Of a DNA stretch of 64,000 bases, positions 5,521 to 49,824 are shown in pieces; the first letter of the stretch is position 1, and every line of letters begins with the position of its first letter. The position numbers were made by a program, and so were the translations under genes. The DNA lies in the sequence record NC_042060.1; one strand, given 5' to 3'. A model generated the notes under the pieces. That model did not search any database. It was not told the DNA's origin and was given only the letters and a program-made list of their open reading frames with translations.

Positions 5521-5757
5521 ATGTACTATGGTAATGTTTATATTATCTTTATTGGTGGTTTATTAATATTTATCCTAGGATTGGTATTTGGAGGAATACT
5601 GGGAGAAGAGAACAATAACGTATATAAACTCAAATCCCAACAATTTGAATACTGCGTTAAAAATAAACAATCAAAAAATAATGACAGTGAAAATATCCAA
5701 GTTATTAAAGTATGCGCAGAGTCTATTGTACTCCTATATCCGACTAATGAAAAATAA
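5521..5757 (+). CDS. Small membrane-anchored protein
   Basis: 78 aa; N-terminal hydrophobic helix, two Cys in the C-terminal part; aaggag SD. Confidence 0.75.
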   Translation: MYYGNVYIIFIGGLLIFILGLVFGGILGEENNNVYKLKSQQFEYCVKNKQSKNNDSENIQVIKVCAESIVLLYPTNEK

Positions 5758-5766
5758 AGCATTTTA

Positions 5767-5793
5767 GCCCTCTTAGGAGGGCTTTTATGTCGT
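5767..5793 (+). terminator. Terminator with TATGTCGT tail
   Basis: gccctc/gagggc stem followed by ttttatgtcgt. Confidence 0.75.
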
Positions 5794-5912
5794 ATGGCTA
5801 ATATGCTAGTGAATAATGAATAAAATCGATTATAGAGCAAATTAGAAGGTATTAAAGGCATAAAGAAAGTCTATCTCTAGACTTATTATTTTTAATTAAA
5901 AAAATATAATCT

Positions 5913-7697: not shown

Positions 7698-7925
7698 TCA
7701 TGGTTCTTCGATTAACAAGTTATTTGCCTCGAAAAAGAATGGGGCTGACCAGCTATAATCTGGTTCATTTACCAGTTTTACACTGTTCTTGGTTTTGATA
7801 ATCTTGCGATCATACCGCCAGTTTTGTGGTCCATGTTTAGGAATAGTGTAGTATTCACCATCGGGTAGATTAGTGGCTTTTTCCCATCCGAGTTCTTTAA
7901 TACTAAACTTTTTATCAGTTGTCAT
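7698..7925 (-). CDS. Hypothetical protein, paralog of 8281..8544
   Basis: Shared NLPxGxYxTxPxHGP motif; start placed at the aagga SD (alternative 7985). Confidence 0.75.
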   Translation of the reverse strand: MTTDKKFSIKELGWEKATNLPDGEYYTIPKHGPQNWRYDRKIIKTKNSVKLVNEPDYSWSAPFFFEANNLLIEEP

Positions 7926-7988
7926 TTTCTTTATTTCCTTGCTGTCATGAAACCACCCGGTGGCCGTATCAAGCTGCGTCCCCATGGT

Positions 7989-8273
7989 TTATACTGCACG
8001 TGGGATCACTGATATCTCAAGAGTCAGATCAGCCGCGTCCAGTAGGTTTACCAGGGCGTCCAGAGAGAACTTGTCAATCTTGCCTTTGAGAAGATCATTC
8101 AATCTCGGTTGCGTAACATGTATGCGAGCAGCAGCGTCTTTTTGCGGAAGATCCCAGCCCTTTATAGTACGGGTGAGAGCCCGCATGAGTTGGGAACGGA
8201 TACGTAGGTTTTCAGTTTCTTTTGTCGAGTCAACTAGTGTATCCCAGACACCGGGAGTGCATTCGTTTGCCAT
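7989..8273 (-). CDS. XRE-family HTH regulator (HigA/HTH_37-like)
   Basis: VWDTL..ENLRIRSQLM, then HTH LPQKDAAARIHVTQPRLNDLLKGKIDKFSLDALV. Confidence 0.85.
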   Translation of the reverse strand: MANECTPGVWDTLVDSTKETENLRIRSQLMRALTRTIKGWDLPQKDAAARIHVTQPRLNDLLKGKIDKFSLDALVNLLDAADLTLEISVIPRAV

Positions 8274-8280
8274 TTATTTA

Positions 8281-8544
8281 TTACCTCTTGAGGTAAATGC
8301 TCGGATAATAAACTACATTATATTTAAAGAAATCACTTACCTTGAATTTTATGTTCGGTGCAGTGATTAGATAACAATAATCACCATCAACCATAACGCG
8401 TCGATCATGGCTATATACCCTAGGACCATGTAACGGAGAAGTTACATAAATCCCATTGGGAAGATTCCGTAAATCGTCTTTATTCAGAAACTTACCATTA
8501 GGATTTATAGTTAATGGATAACAACCAGGATTAAGTTTATGCAT
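8281..8544 (-). CDS. Hypothetical protein, paralog of 7698..7925
   Basis: 87 aa; gaggtg SD. Confidence 0.8.
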   Translation of the reverse strand: MHKLNPGCYPLTINPNGKFLNKDDLRNLPNGIYVTSPLHGPRVYSHDRRVMVDGDYCYLITAPNIKFKVSDFFKYNVVYYPSIYLKR

Positions 8545-8560
8545 ATTTCACCTCTTTTAT

Positions 8561-8589
8561 AAACCACCCTTATATAGGGTGGTTTTTTT
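8561..8589. terminator. Terminator
   Basis: aaaccaccct/agggtggttt stem with T-rich flank. Confidence 0.7.
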
Positions 8590-8865
8590 CTATTGACCAA
8601 TATACGTGCTGGTGTATAATTCAATGGTTGGTTTATGAATGGTCAGATTATATTTCTTAGCTAAATCATCAATATCCCTGGAACAATCAATGAATTTGCC
8701 AGTCTCTCGGTAGCGCATCACCCATGAACCCCGAAATGGTGCATCATCTAATGGATTAATACCATATTCACGACATACCACAATTGCTTCATGTCGTGGA
8801 GTAGCACCAGTAGTGACAAAGTGATTTTCATAAACTGGGATCATTGATACATCTTTATTGCTCAT
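8590..8865 (-). CDS. Hypothetical protein, paralog of 9859..10110
   Basis: REYGINP..P.RGSWV.R...TG.FID motif; start moved to MSNKDV (agagagg SD). Confidence 0.8.
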   Translation of the reverse strand: MSNKDVSMIPVYENHFVTTGATPRHEAIVVCREYGINPLDDAPFRGSWVMRYRETGKFIDCSRDIDDLAKKYNLTIHKPTIELYTSTYIGQ

Positions 8866-8906
8866 AATAACCTCTCTAAAATTACCTGAAGGGATATGCA
8901 TGATAT

Positions 8907-9404
8907 TTATTTTTGTTTTTGACTGATCATGGAGGCATTGGTGAAGTAATATAACGCATGTTTCCAATCTTGAGGGTCATATGTGCACTTATGAGCAACC
9001 ACATAATCACCATCAATTTTTTTGAACAAGTTTACCATGATCACCTCATCCATATCAGTCCCGTTATGCACAGTTTGATAATTCAGTCTCACCAACATGT
9101 CATCTACATTGGTTTTCAACTGGAGACCATCTTTGAAGAAATCACGAACACCATCCATGATTTGTTCATTGCGAGACAGGATGTTTTCAGAGATCTGTTC
9201 GAACATACCCCTTGCACCGATCAAACGTAATTGATCGTAATTGGGTTCACCCATGCAGATGGCCTCATCATCACGATTACACATCTTCTCCAGCAGAACG
9301 ATAGGGTTATAATCCCAAGCAACCCCACCAGTTACAACAGAGGTCAAATAGCCATAGAGACTGAGTTCACTGTCACGCTCATTTGCAGGAATCATGCGGT
9401 TCAT
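8907..9404 (-). CDS. Hypothetical protein
   Basis: Start moved to MNRMIPA (gagga SD). Confidence 0.75.
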   Translation of the reverse strand: MNRMIPANERDSELSLYGYLTSVVTGGVAWDYNPIVLLEKMCNRDDEAICMGEPNYDQLRLIGARGMFEQISENILSRNEQIMDGVRDFFKDGLQLKTNVDDMLVRLNYQTVHNGTDMDEVIMVNLFKKIDGDYVVAHKCTYDPQDWKHALYYFTNASMISQKQK

Positions 9405-46890: not shown

Positions 46891-47062
46891 GACGATATCC
46901 TTTTTATACGGAATTATTAACATAGGGTTGGACAGATAGTTATTCTTTAATATAGTGTAAAATTACCAAATGTGTTAAATATATGTTGAACTAATCATTT
47001 TTTTTCATTTGTCAATTTATATTGGCAAATATTAAATTAAGCCTCTATCGGAGTATAACAAG

Positions 47063-47557
47063 ATGTCAAATAAAGCTAAAGAACCAACTCTAACTAAAGA
47101 ACAGGAAAAGACTCTACGTCTATTTGAACGTGCAGTTGGAGCATCAGCTGCCGCAGCTGATCATATTCTTAACCGTGATGGTTGGGATGTTGTCAATGTA
47201 CTAGCAGGTTCCGTAGGTAAACGTATTCTACAAACTGAAGTATTCATTAATCCAGTTATCAATAAGATCAATGAAATCATTCCGACGTTATCTGATCCTA
47301 CTGGATTCCAAAAGAACCTACAAACAGTTATTGCTGACCTTAATCGACTAACTAAAATTATCAGTGTCCTATATGCACAACATCAAGGTAAGGCTGGTCC
47401 AGCAAATAATGAAGATGAACTAAAACTCATCAGTGAACTTGTTACTAAATACACTGGTATTGAAGGTGCTATTGAACGCGGTATTGATGGTGTAATCCTA
47501 GCGATGATCGGCACTCTTCGAGAAGCTGGTTGGGACGAAAAACTAATTCAACAATAA
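47063..47557 (+). CDS. Hypothetical protein (gp78-like)
   Basis: 164 aa; ggag SD. Confidence 0.8.
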   Translation: MSNKAKEPTLTKEQEKTLRLFERAVGASAAAADHILNRDGWDVVNVLAGSVGKRILQTEVFINPVINKINEIIPTLSDPTGFQKNLQTVIADLNRLTKIISVLYAQHQGKAGPANNEDELKLISELVTKYTGIEGAIERGIDGVILAMIGTLREAGWDEKLIQQ

Positions 47558-47568
47558 TGGAGTTTTAA

Positions 47569-49170
47569 ATGGCTACTGCTGACTTCGATAATGAGTACGA
47601 TGATACTCCAGAAGAGAATTTACTAGATCAAATTGATGAGATCAATGCGCAACACGATCCTGACTCTAGTATTGAAAATAATGACGAGGTGGAAACTCCA
47701 CCTTTCGTTCCTGATCAAAAAGAAATTAAACTACGTATTCCACGTAATGCTAAAACTGGAAATATCCGGGATGCTTCTGAACCGGCTATTAAAGATAGTG
47801 CTAGCATTCTTACTTTACTACGTGAGAATCCCCAGACTGTTTATAATTTCCTGGATCACAATAAAGAACTATTTAAAGCATTTGCTGATAATAAAGTAGA
47901 TGACACTAGTGACGGTGTAAAGTGGACAGCTGCTATTCTGGAAGGCTTAGCTCACTCTATTGTTGAAGATGCACCAATCGGTGCAACTGCCCGAGAAGGT
48001 TCTGAATGGTCTAGTGAAATTCCTTATGGTGAAAAGATCATTCGACCTGGCCGACCTGTATTTAATACCAATGGTCGTAAAATGACCGATGATGAAACTC
48101 TAGTTTTCCTAACACGTAAAGCTAACATCGGTACGCCATATGATACTTTCCTACCTCATTCAGGTATTTGGGTAAAACTACGTGCACCTACTGGTACTGA
48201 AGTAGCTGCCCTACAAGCACGTCTAGCACAATTAAAGATCCGGCTAGGCGCTGAATCAAAAGGTATGCTGTTCTCAAACATGGCAGCTGTGTTACTTAAC
48301 ATGGTTAGTAGTTTAGCACTTGCATGTGTTATTCAATCCAACTATAAGTTCAACACCCCAACTGATCTAGAGCATGTTATCTCAGTAGCTGATGAGCCGT
48401 TCTTGCATCACGCACTAGCGGCGACTATGTATCCAGATGGATTTAATTATAGTTATCCATGCATTGCAGATGCCAATACATGTAACCATATTGAAACAGC
48501 GAAACTTAATATGTCAACGCTTGTTCAATATGATCTACTGGCATTCTCAGAAGAACAAAAGAAATATATTGCACGTAAGTTTAATGCATGTACTGAATCT
48601 GATCTTAAGACTTATAAAGAAGGATTCCGTATTGAAACTCAAGTAACTGAAATGTTTGGTGACGTTGGTGTTGTTCTTGAGATGTGTACAATTGCTGATC
48701 GCCGAGAGTCTGGTGATAGTTGGATTAACTCAATTATCGATATGACTCAAGGTAGTTTTAATGAACCAGTCGATGGTCCGCAACGTTCTCAGTATATTGC
48801 ACGTTTACAAAAGATCTCTATTGCCCGTCAGTTCTCACATTTTGTTAAAGAAATTAAAGTACGTGAAGATGACGATGGTGAAAGTTCTGAAGACAATATT
48901 CGTACTGCAACCACTAATCGTGAAACTATTGAAAAGTTCTTAACTAATATTCTATCCACACCGGAATATAATGACCGCTTTATTAATGCGGTGAGTAACT
49001 TCATTGATTCACAACTAATTGGAATGATTGCAATTACAAGTTGGAATTGTCCAGTATGTGAGTCACCTGCTGCTACTAAATTTAAAGAACGTTTCCCACA
49101 CTTAATCCCTATTGACATGCTGTCAACTTTTTTTACTTTGGCGGCCTCGAAGTCAAACCGGATGGTGTAG
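47569..49170 (+). CDS. Putative tail/baseplate assembly chaperone (gp77-like)
   Basis: 533 aa; LRAPT motif, Cys pairs (CIADANTC, CPVC), ends ...STFF like T4 gp26-type chaperones (inference). Confidence 0.6.
   Translation: MATADFDNEYDDTPEENLLDQIDEINAQHDPDSSIENNDEVETPPFVPDQKEIKLRIPRNAKTGNIRDASEPAIKDSASILTLLRENPQTVYNFLDHNKELFKAFADNKVDDTSDGVKWTAAILEGLAHSIVEDAPIGATAREGSEWSSEIPYGEKIIRPGRPVFNTNGRKMTDDETLVFLTRKANIGTPYDTFLPHSGIWVKLRAPTGTEVAALQARLAQLKIRLGAESKGMLFSNMAAVLLNMVSSLALACVIQSNYKFNTPTDLEHVISVADEPFLHHALAATMYPDGFNYSYPCIADANTCNHIETAKLNMSTLVQYDLLAFSEEQKKYIARKFNACTESDLKTYKEGFRIETQVTEMFGDVGVVLEMCTIADRRESGDSWINSIIDMTQGSFNEPVDGPQRSQYIARLQKISIARQFSHFVKEIKVREDDDGESSEDNIRTATTNRETIEKFLTNILSTPEYNDRFINAVSNFIDSQLIGMIAITSWNCPVCESPAATKFKERFPHLIPIDMLSTFFTLAASKSNRMV
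49128..49134 (+). promoter_or_regulatory. Slippery heptamer U UUU UUU (candidate -1 frameshift)
   Basis: In-frame ACT TTT TTT; the -1 frame is open from 49116 to 49631. Confidence 0.65.
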
Positions 49171-49631
49171 TTAATGATCTGAGATATAGTCGTCTTGAGG
49201 CCACTTTCACGGAAGATAGTGGCCACATCCTACATCCAAACTTTGGTTATGATAAGTTAACTGAAGATGATACACACTTAGATAGACTATTATCGACAGT
49301 AGGGGCAGTAAGACCGTCTACAGCAGCACGTTTAACAAGAGAAGCATATCTACTTGATTACGATATCGGTTCACCAGAAAACGGACCCATGTGGTTAAAT
49401 AAAGTAAATCCTAAAGAGGATTTTATCGAAGGTGGGTTGAGAAGGAGACTGACTAGAGATTTCTTCAAGTATAAAGTAGGTAGCTTATCTAATATGTCAT
49501 TAACTGAATTCTTTGAATTAGCTTATTCTGAGGTAGAATACATAATTGAATTATGTAGGAATATTACTCATAATGAGGCTGTTAATAACAATAACCAGTT
49601 AAATGAATTAAACAAGCCGTTAACTAAATAA
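49128..49631 (+). CDS. gp76-like frame, probably expressed as a -1 frameshift extension of gp77
   Basis: 87 sense codons without ATG/GTG/TTG between the slippery site and the ORF-track ATG at 49389. Confidence 0.65.
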   Translation, partial: FFYFGGLEVKPDGVVNDLRYSRLEATFTEDSGHILHPNFGYDKLTEDDTHLDRLLSTVGAVRPSTAARLTREAYLLDYDIGSPENGPMWLNKVNPKEDFIEGGLRRRLTRDFFKYKVGSLSNMSLTEFFELAYSEVEYIIELCRNITHNEAVNNNNQLNELNKPLTK

Positions 49632-49647
49632 AAAAAATAAAGACAGG

Positions 49648-49679
49648 CCCCTCTCCACATGGAGAGGGGTTTATGTCGT
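49648..49679. terminator. Bidirectional terminator with TATGTCGT
   Basis: cccctctcc/ggagagggg stem between convergent ORFs. Confidence 0.8.
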
Positions 49680-49680
49680 C

Positions 49681-49824
49681 TTACTTACGTGCAAAGCTAG
49701 CTACAAGACCTTTGATAGCTAGAACGACCATCCAGGCCGTTAACCCTTTTATTGGGTGGATATCAACCCGTTCTTCGATATCCAGATTACCCTCACTATT
49801 GATTACCTCAATTCGTACTTGCAT
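49681..49824 (-). CDS. Small membrane protein (47 aa, MQVRIEVINSEG...)
   Basis: Manual translation; aaggag SD; C-terminal hydrophobic helix. Confidence 0.7.
   Translation of the reverse strand: MQVRIEVINSEGNLDIEERVDIHPIKGLTAWMVVLAIKGLVASFARK

Follow-up and report, generated by a model that had tools for sequence, protein, structure and literature searches.

Reading frames at the 3′-end of gp77

The window analysed here, a stretch of 64,000 nucleotides (nt) from sequence record NC_042060.1 whose first letter is position 1, contained gp77, a gene whose 3′-end overlapped a second open frame at a run of seven T residues. Between nt 47000 and 50000, the window shared 100% identity with Pseudomonas phage PA7 and 99.1% with phiKZ. 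The 0-frame open reading frame (ORF), located at nt 47569–49170 on the plus strand, was PHIKZ077/FDI90_gp303 (gp77) and encoded a protein of 533 amino acids (aa), which matched phrog_4585 with an E value of 7e-196. On the same strand, nt 49116–49631 formed an open frame of 171 codons plus a stop in the -1 register, which matched phrog_12109. The two frames shared 55 nt (49116–49170, plus strand), and this overlap held the T7 run, which reads T_TTT_TTT in the 0 frame and is situated 11 codons before the 0-frame stop. We propose the overlap as the site of a -1 slip, with the 533-aa protein as the short isoform and the -1 frame as a putative 165-residue C-terminal extension from the T-run on.

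The initial annotation of this DNA had noted the T7 run near the 3′-end of gp77 and a -1 frame open from nt 49116, both of which were found as described when the sequence was re-read, and its figure of 687 aa for the slip product (522 + 165) was arithmetically right. It had also held that the -1 frame lacks a start codon ahead of the annotated one; indeed, the first ATG, GTG, or TTG of that frame was the ATG at nt 49389, codon 92 of the open frame, from which the databases call a coding sequence of 80 aa (nt 49389–49631, plus strand). No Shine-Dalgarno (SD)-like sequence was visible before this ATG. The name gp76 used there for the downstream ORF was wrong, the ORF being PHIKZ076.4 in RefSeq and FDI90_gp304 in PA7, and gp76 a different ORF on the opposite strand.

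Runs of at least seven T residues occurred 14 times on the two strands of the window, and only the run in gp77 lay deep within a long ORF and was followed by a long open -1 frame (519 ORF codons upstream, 167 open -1 codons behind). Of the other 13, one was 24 codons inside a gene and the rest were in short-ORF or intergenic stretches, all of them outside the body of long ORFs. The coding sequence of this AT-rich genome seems to avoid long T-runs, and the gp77 run therefore stands out. Because it is unique among the 14 and kept in all relatives examined, the arrangement is beyond chance.

Conservation of the layout and selection on the T-run

For comparison, 19 named phages were fetched (phiKZ, Churi, PA7, PhiPA3, 201phi2-1, PA1C, Psa21, Phabio, Noxifer, Xoo-sp14, RSF1, PCH45, SPN3US, Ea35-70, Bacillus phage AgentSmith, Halocynthia phage JM-2012, Aeromonas LAh10, Vibrio BONAISHI, and Klebsiella FBKp24) and 71 IMG/VR contigs were added. 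The main census comprised 85 evaluable loci, representing 67 distinct junctions with a local G+C content of 30–60%, and included gp77 homologs with aa identity to gp77 down to about 22%. At all 85 loci, the frame open past the 0-frame stop was the -1 frame, extending over 128–170 codons where the contig allowed, and the overlap of 46–262 nt contained a run of five to eight T residues (T5–T8). The +1 frame was usually shut within a few codons. The same layout was present in four further named phages outside the main census, and the hosts of phages having it were Pseudomonas, Erwinia, Salmonella, Serratia, Klebsiella, Ralstonia, Xanthomonas, Vibrio, Aeromonas, and Bacillus. This comparison strongly supports a conserved -1 frameshift at the T-run that links gp77 with the downstream ORF, as first suggested from the window alone, in that every lineage evaluated kept a T5–T8 run and an open upstream part of the -1 frame.

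Sequencing errors and mutations are notoriously frequent in homopolymer runs, and the two frames might accordingly represent a single ORF interrupted by one frameshift, through breakage or through an assembly error. However, both frames had the same bounds in 47 independently sequenced phiKZ-like genomes, which excludes sequencing error and recent breakage, and the same frame change was observed in 67 of 67 junctions from phages with hosts ranging from Pseudomonas to Bacillus. A profile search of 1.84 billion cluster representatives returned 1684 members of the gp77 family, 1112 of them at E ≤ 1e-30. The best 150 of the 1684 all ended within 26 residues of the profile end, and therefore none of these 150 carried the extension in frame. 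In addition, both frames were under purifying selection, as judged from conservation in the 0-frame and -1 alignments. A broken gene or sequencing error is thus effectively refuted, and its probability is negligible.

For the -1 frame, the match to phrog_12109 covered residues 33–169 of the translation, in which the annotated Met is residue 92. Searches by tblastn with this translation matched 68 Pseudomonas phages; identities of 34% to 40% were shared with phages of other genera (PhiPA3, 201phi2-1, PA1C, Psa21, Phabio, and Noxifer), most of these alignments starting from residues 1–6 and lying beneath two annotated ORFs. An alignment of 54 translations of the -1 frame, each running from the T-run to its stop, had five near-invariant columns, and four of them (F39, G40, Y74, and P87 of the window piece) were located upstream of the annotated ATG.

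These columns bear on whether the downstream ORF is a gene of its own, translated from the annotated ATG or by termination-reinitiation, with an overlap that is incidental. All database records do annotate two separate ORFs, and an ATG or GTG is found soon past the upstream stop in some lineages, e.g., PCH45 and Psa21. Nevertheless, the frame relation was -1 in every lineage, and conserved residues preceded any start codon in most of them: no ATG, GTG, or TTG occurred between the run and the conserved F-G pair in 35 of the 54 lineages, no ATG in 45, and no start codon preceded by an SD-like motif in 51. The third position of the first Phe codon was moreover an invariant T, a feature that counts against two genes, and since the run lay between 24 and 132 nt ahead of the 0-frame stop, depending on the lineage, a restart linked to that stop is unlikely. 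Independent initiation and stop-linked restart of the downstream ORF were rejected on this start-codon and distance evidence, which leaves two separate genes quite improbable, and we judge the 80-aa coding sequence at nt 49389 to be a truncated call of the -1 extension.

The 0-frame tail was conserved as well. Among 114 family members, F521 was invariant, and F522 and L524 were conserved in at least 90%; the second base of the L524 codon was T in 67 of 67 junctions. In the AlphaFold2 model of gp77, a confident terminal helix (residues 517–532) began at the site. A few codons past the site, some 0-frame third positions were unusually conserved (share of 0.76), these being positions at which changes are silent in the -1 frame. 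Because its tail is conserved, the short form looks functional too, and we read the overlap as dual-coding, the short form keeping a functional C-terminal helix that the long form replaces.

At the nucleotide level, a core of four T residues, including the third position of the first codon, was invariant in 67 of 67 junctions; at nearby ordinary third positions of the 0 frame, the share of the top base was 0.34–0.6. The first codon of the site was TTT in 66 of the 67, and Phe codons elsewhere in the same genes were 69% TTC and 31% TTT. The run was T7 or T8 in 40 junctions and T5 or T6 in the other 27, and a perfect X_XXY_YYZ heptamer in the 0-frame register was present in 46. Bacillus phage AgentSmith has Val-Phe-Leu instead of Phe-Phe, yet seven T residues are kept in register. 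Judging from the TTTT core, the TTT codon in 66 of 67 junctions, and the -1 relation at 85 of 85 loci, the site and its frame relation are conserved beyond the coding requirement.

A protein word-search with the -1 piece gave one near-identical partial match, and a search with the alignment gave 11 short ORFs truncated by gene callers. A 96-aa entry named "hypothetical protein, partial [Klebsiella pneumoniae]", encoded on a contig of 288 nt, was 85% to 89% identical to the -1 ORF, started upstream of the annotated ATG, and diverged over its last 20 residues or so; the contig probably stems from a phiKZ-like phage and was included in a bacterial assembly.

Possible ribosomal or transcriptional slippage

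In the mechanism that we propose, gp77 would give rise to two isoforms from one mRNA. Most ribosomes would read the 0 frame to the stop at nt 49170, the product being the 533-aa protein, with its last helix beginning at the site. Some would slip back one nt on the T-run within nt 49116–49170, by tandem slippage of two Phe-tRNAs on T_TTT_TTT, and would continue in the -1 frame to nt 49631, thereby producing a protein of about 687 aa that has, in place of the terminal helix, a linker, probably disordered, and a small helical domain. Family-wide programmed -1 recoding of this ribosomal type, with two functional isoforms (about 533 and 687 aa), is the reading favoured by the comparative data, and we assign it a probability of roughly 0.75. 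That recoding of one kind or the other takes place, by the ribosome or by the polymerase, is highly probable. The anatomy of the site, its conservation, the selection on the T-run at the level of nucleotides, the lack of start codons, and the absence of fused forms from the representatives examined are observed; the ribosomal nature of the slip, the making of and need for both isoforms, and their ratio are inferred.

The same two proteins would result from transcriptional slippage, with the phage RNA polymerase stuttering on the T-run and releasing mRNAs with one extra U. Slippage of this type on A/T runs is known from Thermus dnaX and from insertion sequence elements, and there, as here, a homopolymer run opens a -1 frame. 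The gp77 site is homopolymeric, with T7–T8 in the 40 junctions mentioned above, a stimulatory RNA structure is not conserved, and the phages concerned are transcribed by their own unusual multisubunit polymerases, encoded by adjoining genes, all of which would suit a polymerase-based event. In contrast to the known cases, however, the runs of the gp77 family are as short as T5–T6 in 27 of 67 junctions, which is short for efficient polymerase stuttering, and the codon register is kept: in 46 junctions the run extends in the 5′ direction to complete the 0-frame X_XXY_YYZ, a register that matters to the ribosome and not to the polymerase. Ribosomal tandem slippage accounts better than stuttering for the register, for the way the run reaches 5′ into the preceding codon, and for the T5–T6 variants, and a transcriptional origin is considered rather unlikely.

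The ribosomal reading also allows comparison with the programmed -1 frameshift in dnaX of E. coli (tau/gamma), which is mentioned in PMC7412058. The dnaX frameshift yields the shorter product and depends on flanking stimulators. The gp77 site is similar in that a bacterial-type -1 slip on a homopolymer-rich heptamer would produce, in a set ratio, two isoforms that have the same N-terminus. It differs in that the shift lengthens the product and in that a conserved stimulator was not found.

Several observations count against ribosomal recoding into two functional isoforms. No significant stimulatory fold was detected downstream of the run in the window (z = -0.78); over the 67 lineages, the mean z of -0.69 was not significantly different from that of controls (-0.47; p = 0.53); and downstream of the run RNAalifold predicted 0 consensus pairs and Rfam gave zero matches. 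The conserved Phe-Phe by itself dictates part of the T-run. In 21 of the 67 junctions the first base of the heptamer was not T (T5/T6), an arrangement weaker for tandem slippage; these were mostly from one subgroup of Pseudomonas phages and read N_TTT_TTY, except for one displaced T5 run. Finally, the model of the -1 piece was poor, with a predicted local distance difference test score (pLDDT) of 58 and low confidence for residues 1–48 and several later segments. Stimulatory structures or SD-like stimulators are not obligatory for programmed -1 frameshift sites, and values of z below -2 were obtained for 22% of the 67 lineages as compared with 4% of controls. Residues from about 101 to 160 of the -1 piece were modelled as a confident helical bundle. 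A fold search with this model returned no match, and neither Pfam, searched with the -1 piece and its 54 relatives, nor the sequence searches of the Protein Data Bank (PDB) gave a family match or anything meaningful.

Four Psa21-like lineages had a markedly stable fold over the 70 nt that follow the T-run (z of about -3 to -3.6), which could be a lineage-specific stimulator.

Relationship to tail assembly proteins and gene neighbourhood

Conserved -1 frameshifts in the tail assembly chaperone genes of long-tailed phages, such as lambda G/GT and P2 E/E′, were reportedly described by Xu, Hendrix and Duda in 2004, and gp77 together with its downstream ORF had initially been likened to such a chaperone pair. 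By sequence anatomy and conservation, gp77 does resemble these genes: a -1 slip near the 3′-end would give a short and a C-terminally extended isoform, the layout is kept across very divergent phages while the sequence diverges, no conserved downstream RNA structure was found for gp77, and the products are apparently not virion components. True membership in the family, with the pair moved away from the tape measure gene, is nevertheless contradicted by other features. Neither piece, nor the 20 and 54 relatives of each that were searched, had a Pfam match to a tail assembly chaperone, and at about 533 and 687 aa the proteins are about four times larger than those of that class. The neighbours of gp77 were gp78, gp79 (head), gp80 and gp74 (RNA polymerase subunits), and gp75 (helicase), instead of the tail tube and tape measure genes between which G/GT lies; the initial remark that the pair does not adjoin a tape-measure gene was thus borne out. 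Furthermore, the product of a gp77 homolog has been seen in an early proteome, and fold searches pointed to another class, the T4-like hub assembly proteins. The assignment to the G/GT family is therefore rejected, its probability being very small. The CPxC...FF and SLTEF... strings cited in support of a chaperone pair are really present in the two proteins; as marks of a chaperone family they are conjectural. In the looser sense of an assembly factor the chaperone idea retains some ground, since the gp77 model resembles in fold the T4-like baseplate hub assembly proteins.

The gene is listed as Chimalliviridae core gene cg18, hypothetical, in the supplement of PMC10299810, and the phrog families matched by both pieces have no function assigned in PHROG. 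Zero matches to Pfam were obtained for gp77 or 20 relatives, and sequence searches of the PDB with the pieces and with family profiles gave nothing meaningful. The AlphaFold2 model of gp77 was of high confidence (pLDDT of 88; predicted template modelling score of 0.88). With this model, Foldseek found no PDB match below an E value of 0.3. Against BFVD, in which case predicted models were compared on both sides, it listed jumbo-phage homologs first, then proteins of intermediate size, and then proteins about 250 aa long that bear the names baseplate hub assembly protein (T4-like), baseplate hub subunit, or hub assembly chaperone, with E values of 1e-4 to 5e-2, probabilities of about 1, and target-normalised template modelling scores of 0.5–0.59. 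Over a dozen or more entries called baseplate hub assembly protein, hub subunit, or hub protein, with E values in the same range, probabilities were 0.95–1.0 and the scores on the target 0.43–0.59. Some GenBank records name gp77 homologs "putative baseplate hub assembly protein". The homolog in Aeromonas phage LAh10 (nt 994–2589 of the fetched locus) is called "putative ZipA-like cell division protein", a label in conflict with the hub assembly names, so that the annotations of the family are inconsistent.

A review of the T4 tail places gp26 and gp51 in its table as chaperones of hub assembly; gp51, though required for assembly, does not occur in the particle (PMC3004832). Both matched PF12322 (E values of 9e-64 and 4e-52; T4 locus nt 7803–8429, minus strand, and nt 8480–9229, plus strand), and on account of these strong matches we take them to be paralogs. 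In the comparison of predicted models, gp77 resembles T4-like proteins of this class in fold, and like gp26 and gp51 it has a CxxC near the C-terminus; it differs in being about twice as long and in lacking a significant match by PF12322 or by profile-profile comparison. Gene 26 of T4 is likewise annotated with two products, 26 and the internal 26′; the second product there arises from a same-frame internal start and not by frameshifting. As regards the virion, annotations of gp77, gp78, and their 201phi2-1 orthologs carry no virion or mass spectrometry note, unlike those of their neighbours, and nowhere in its main text does the paper on the Goslar virion structure mention gp81, the cg18 homolog.

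These findings suggest, at somewhat less than even odds, that gp77 acts in morphogenesis as a non-virion factor of the same class as T4 gp26/gp51, that of baseplate hub assembly. If so, the pair would work like G/GT, with a short and an extended assembly factor in a fixed ratio, while standing outside that family. Weighing against the assignment, the PF12322 profile did not match gp77 or its relatives, and hhalign comparison of the gp77 family with T4 gp26, gp51, and a 10-sequence alignment of both recovered only the local CxxC, with probabilities of 9% to 52%. The link to T4 hub assembly thus comes from fold comparison, by which membership is plausible and unproven. Moreover, of the two putative products, the only one with a homolog reported in a proteome is that of the 0 frame, and this homolog, gp256 of Churi, is listed with proteins that appear at an early stage of infection (PMC11849849), a timing hard to match with a late role in tail assembly. 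Pattern scans for relatives of T4 gp26 and gp51 retrieved close ones only.

A bolder interpretation, which we hold to be doubtful, is that the recoding site is an ancient, family-defining trait of the nucleus-forming jumbo phages, that a fixed ratio of short to long cg18 product is obligatory for the giant baseplate hub or for some other early step, and that the small downstream ORF is a hidden core domain. In a more unusual form of this interpretation, the shift would be made by the phage RNA polymerase or tuned by phage ribosome-binding proteins. No published description of the site was found in the literature on phiKZ gp77, on frameshifting in jumbo phages or Chimalliviridae, or on hub assembly. 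If programmed recoding at gp77 is real, it would be the first such event found documented for Chimalliviridae in the literature searched, and the annotation of core gene cg18 would be corrected in hundreds of jumbo-phage genomes; the small downstream ORF, with its arbitrary starts and lengths of about 45–155 aa, would turn out to be the C-terminal domain of a second isoform, and so a part of the core proteome that has been overlooked. Should the hub-assembly assignment hold, the logic of making two isoforms by a -1 slip in tail morphogenesis would extend to a different protein class. The site would also offer a conserved and simple case in which frameshifting could be measured while ribosome-binding proteins of the phage remodel translation in the cell.

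Directly upstream of gp77, nt 47063–47557 on the plus strand encoded the PHIKZ078 ortholog (164 aa, phrog_14050). A gp78-like ORF was located 5′ of the gp77-like ORF in every annotated relative, often abutting it or overlapping it by a few bases (e.g., in 201phi2-1, PhiPA3, and SPN3US). The two genes are probably co-transcribed, and because the ORFs so often abut or overlap, translational coupling and a functional partnership of gp78 with gp77 are suggested. Downstream, a GC-rich hairpin of 9 bp at nt 49648–49669, with a terminator score on both strands, was situated between convergent units and ends both the gp78-gp77-extension unit on the plus strand and the opposite unit with a PHIKZ076.3-like ORF on the minus strand. 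This ORF (47 aa, nt 49681–49824) has a homolog in phage Churi (OM718002; nt 5683–5826 of the fetched locus) that is called "baseplate hub protein", an odd label for an ORF so small, which may have been displaced from the adjoining gp77 homolog.

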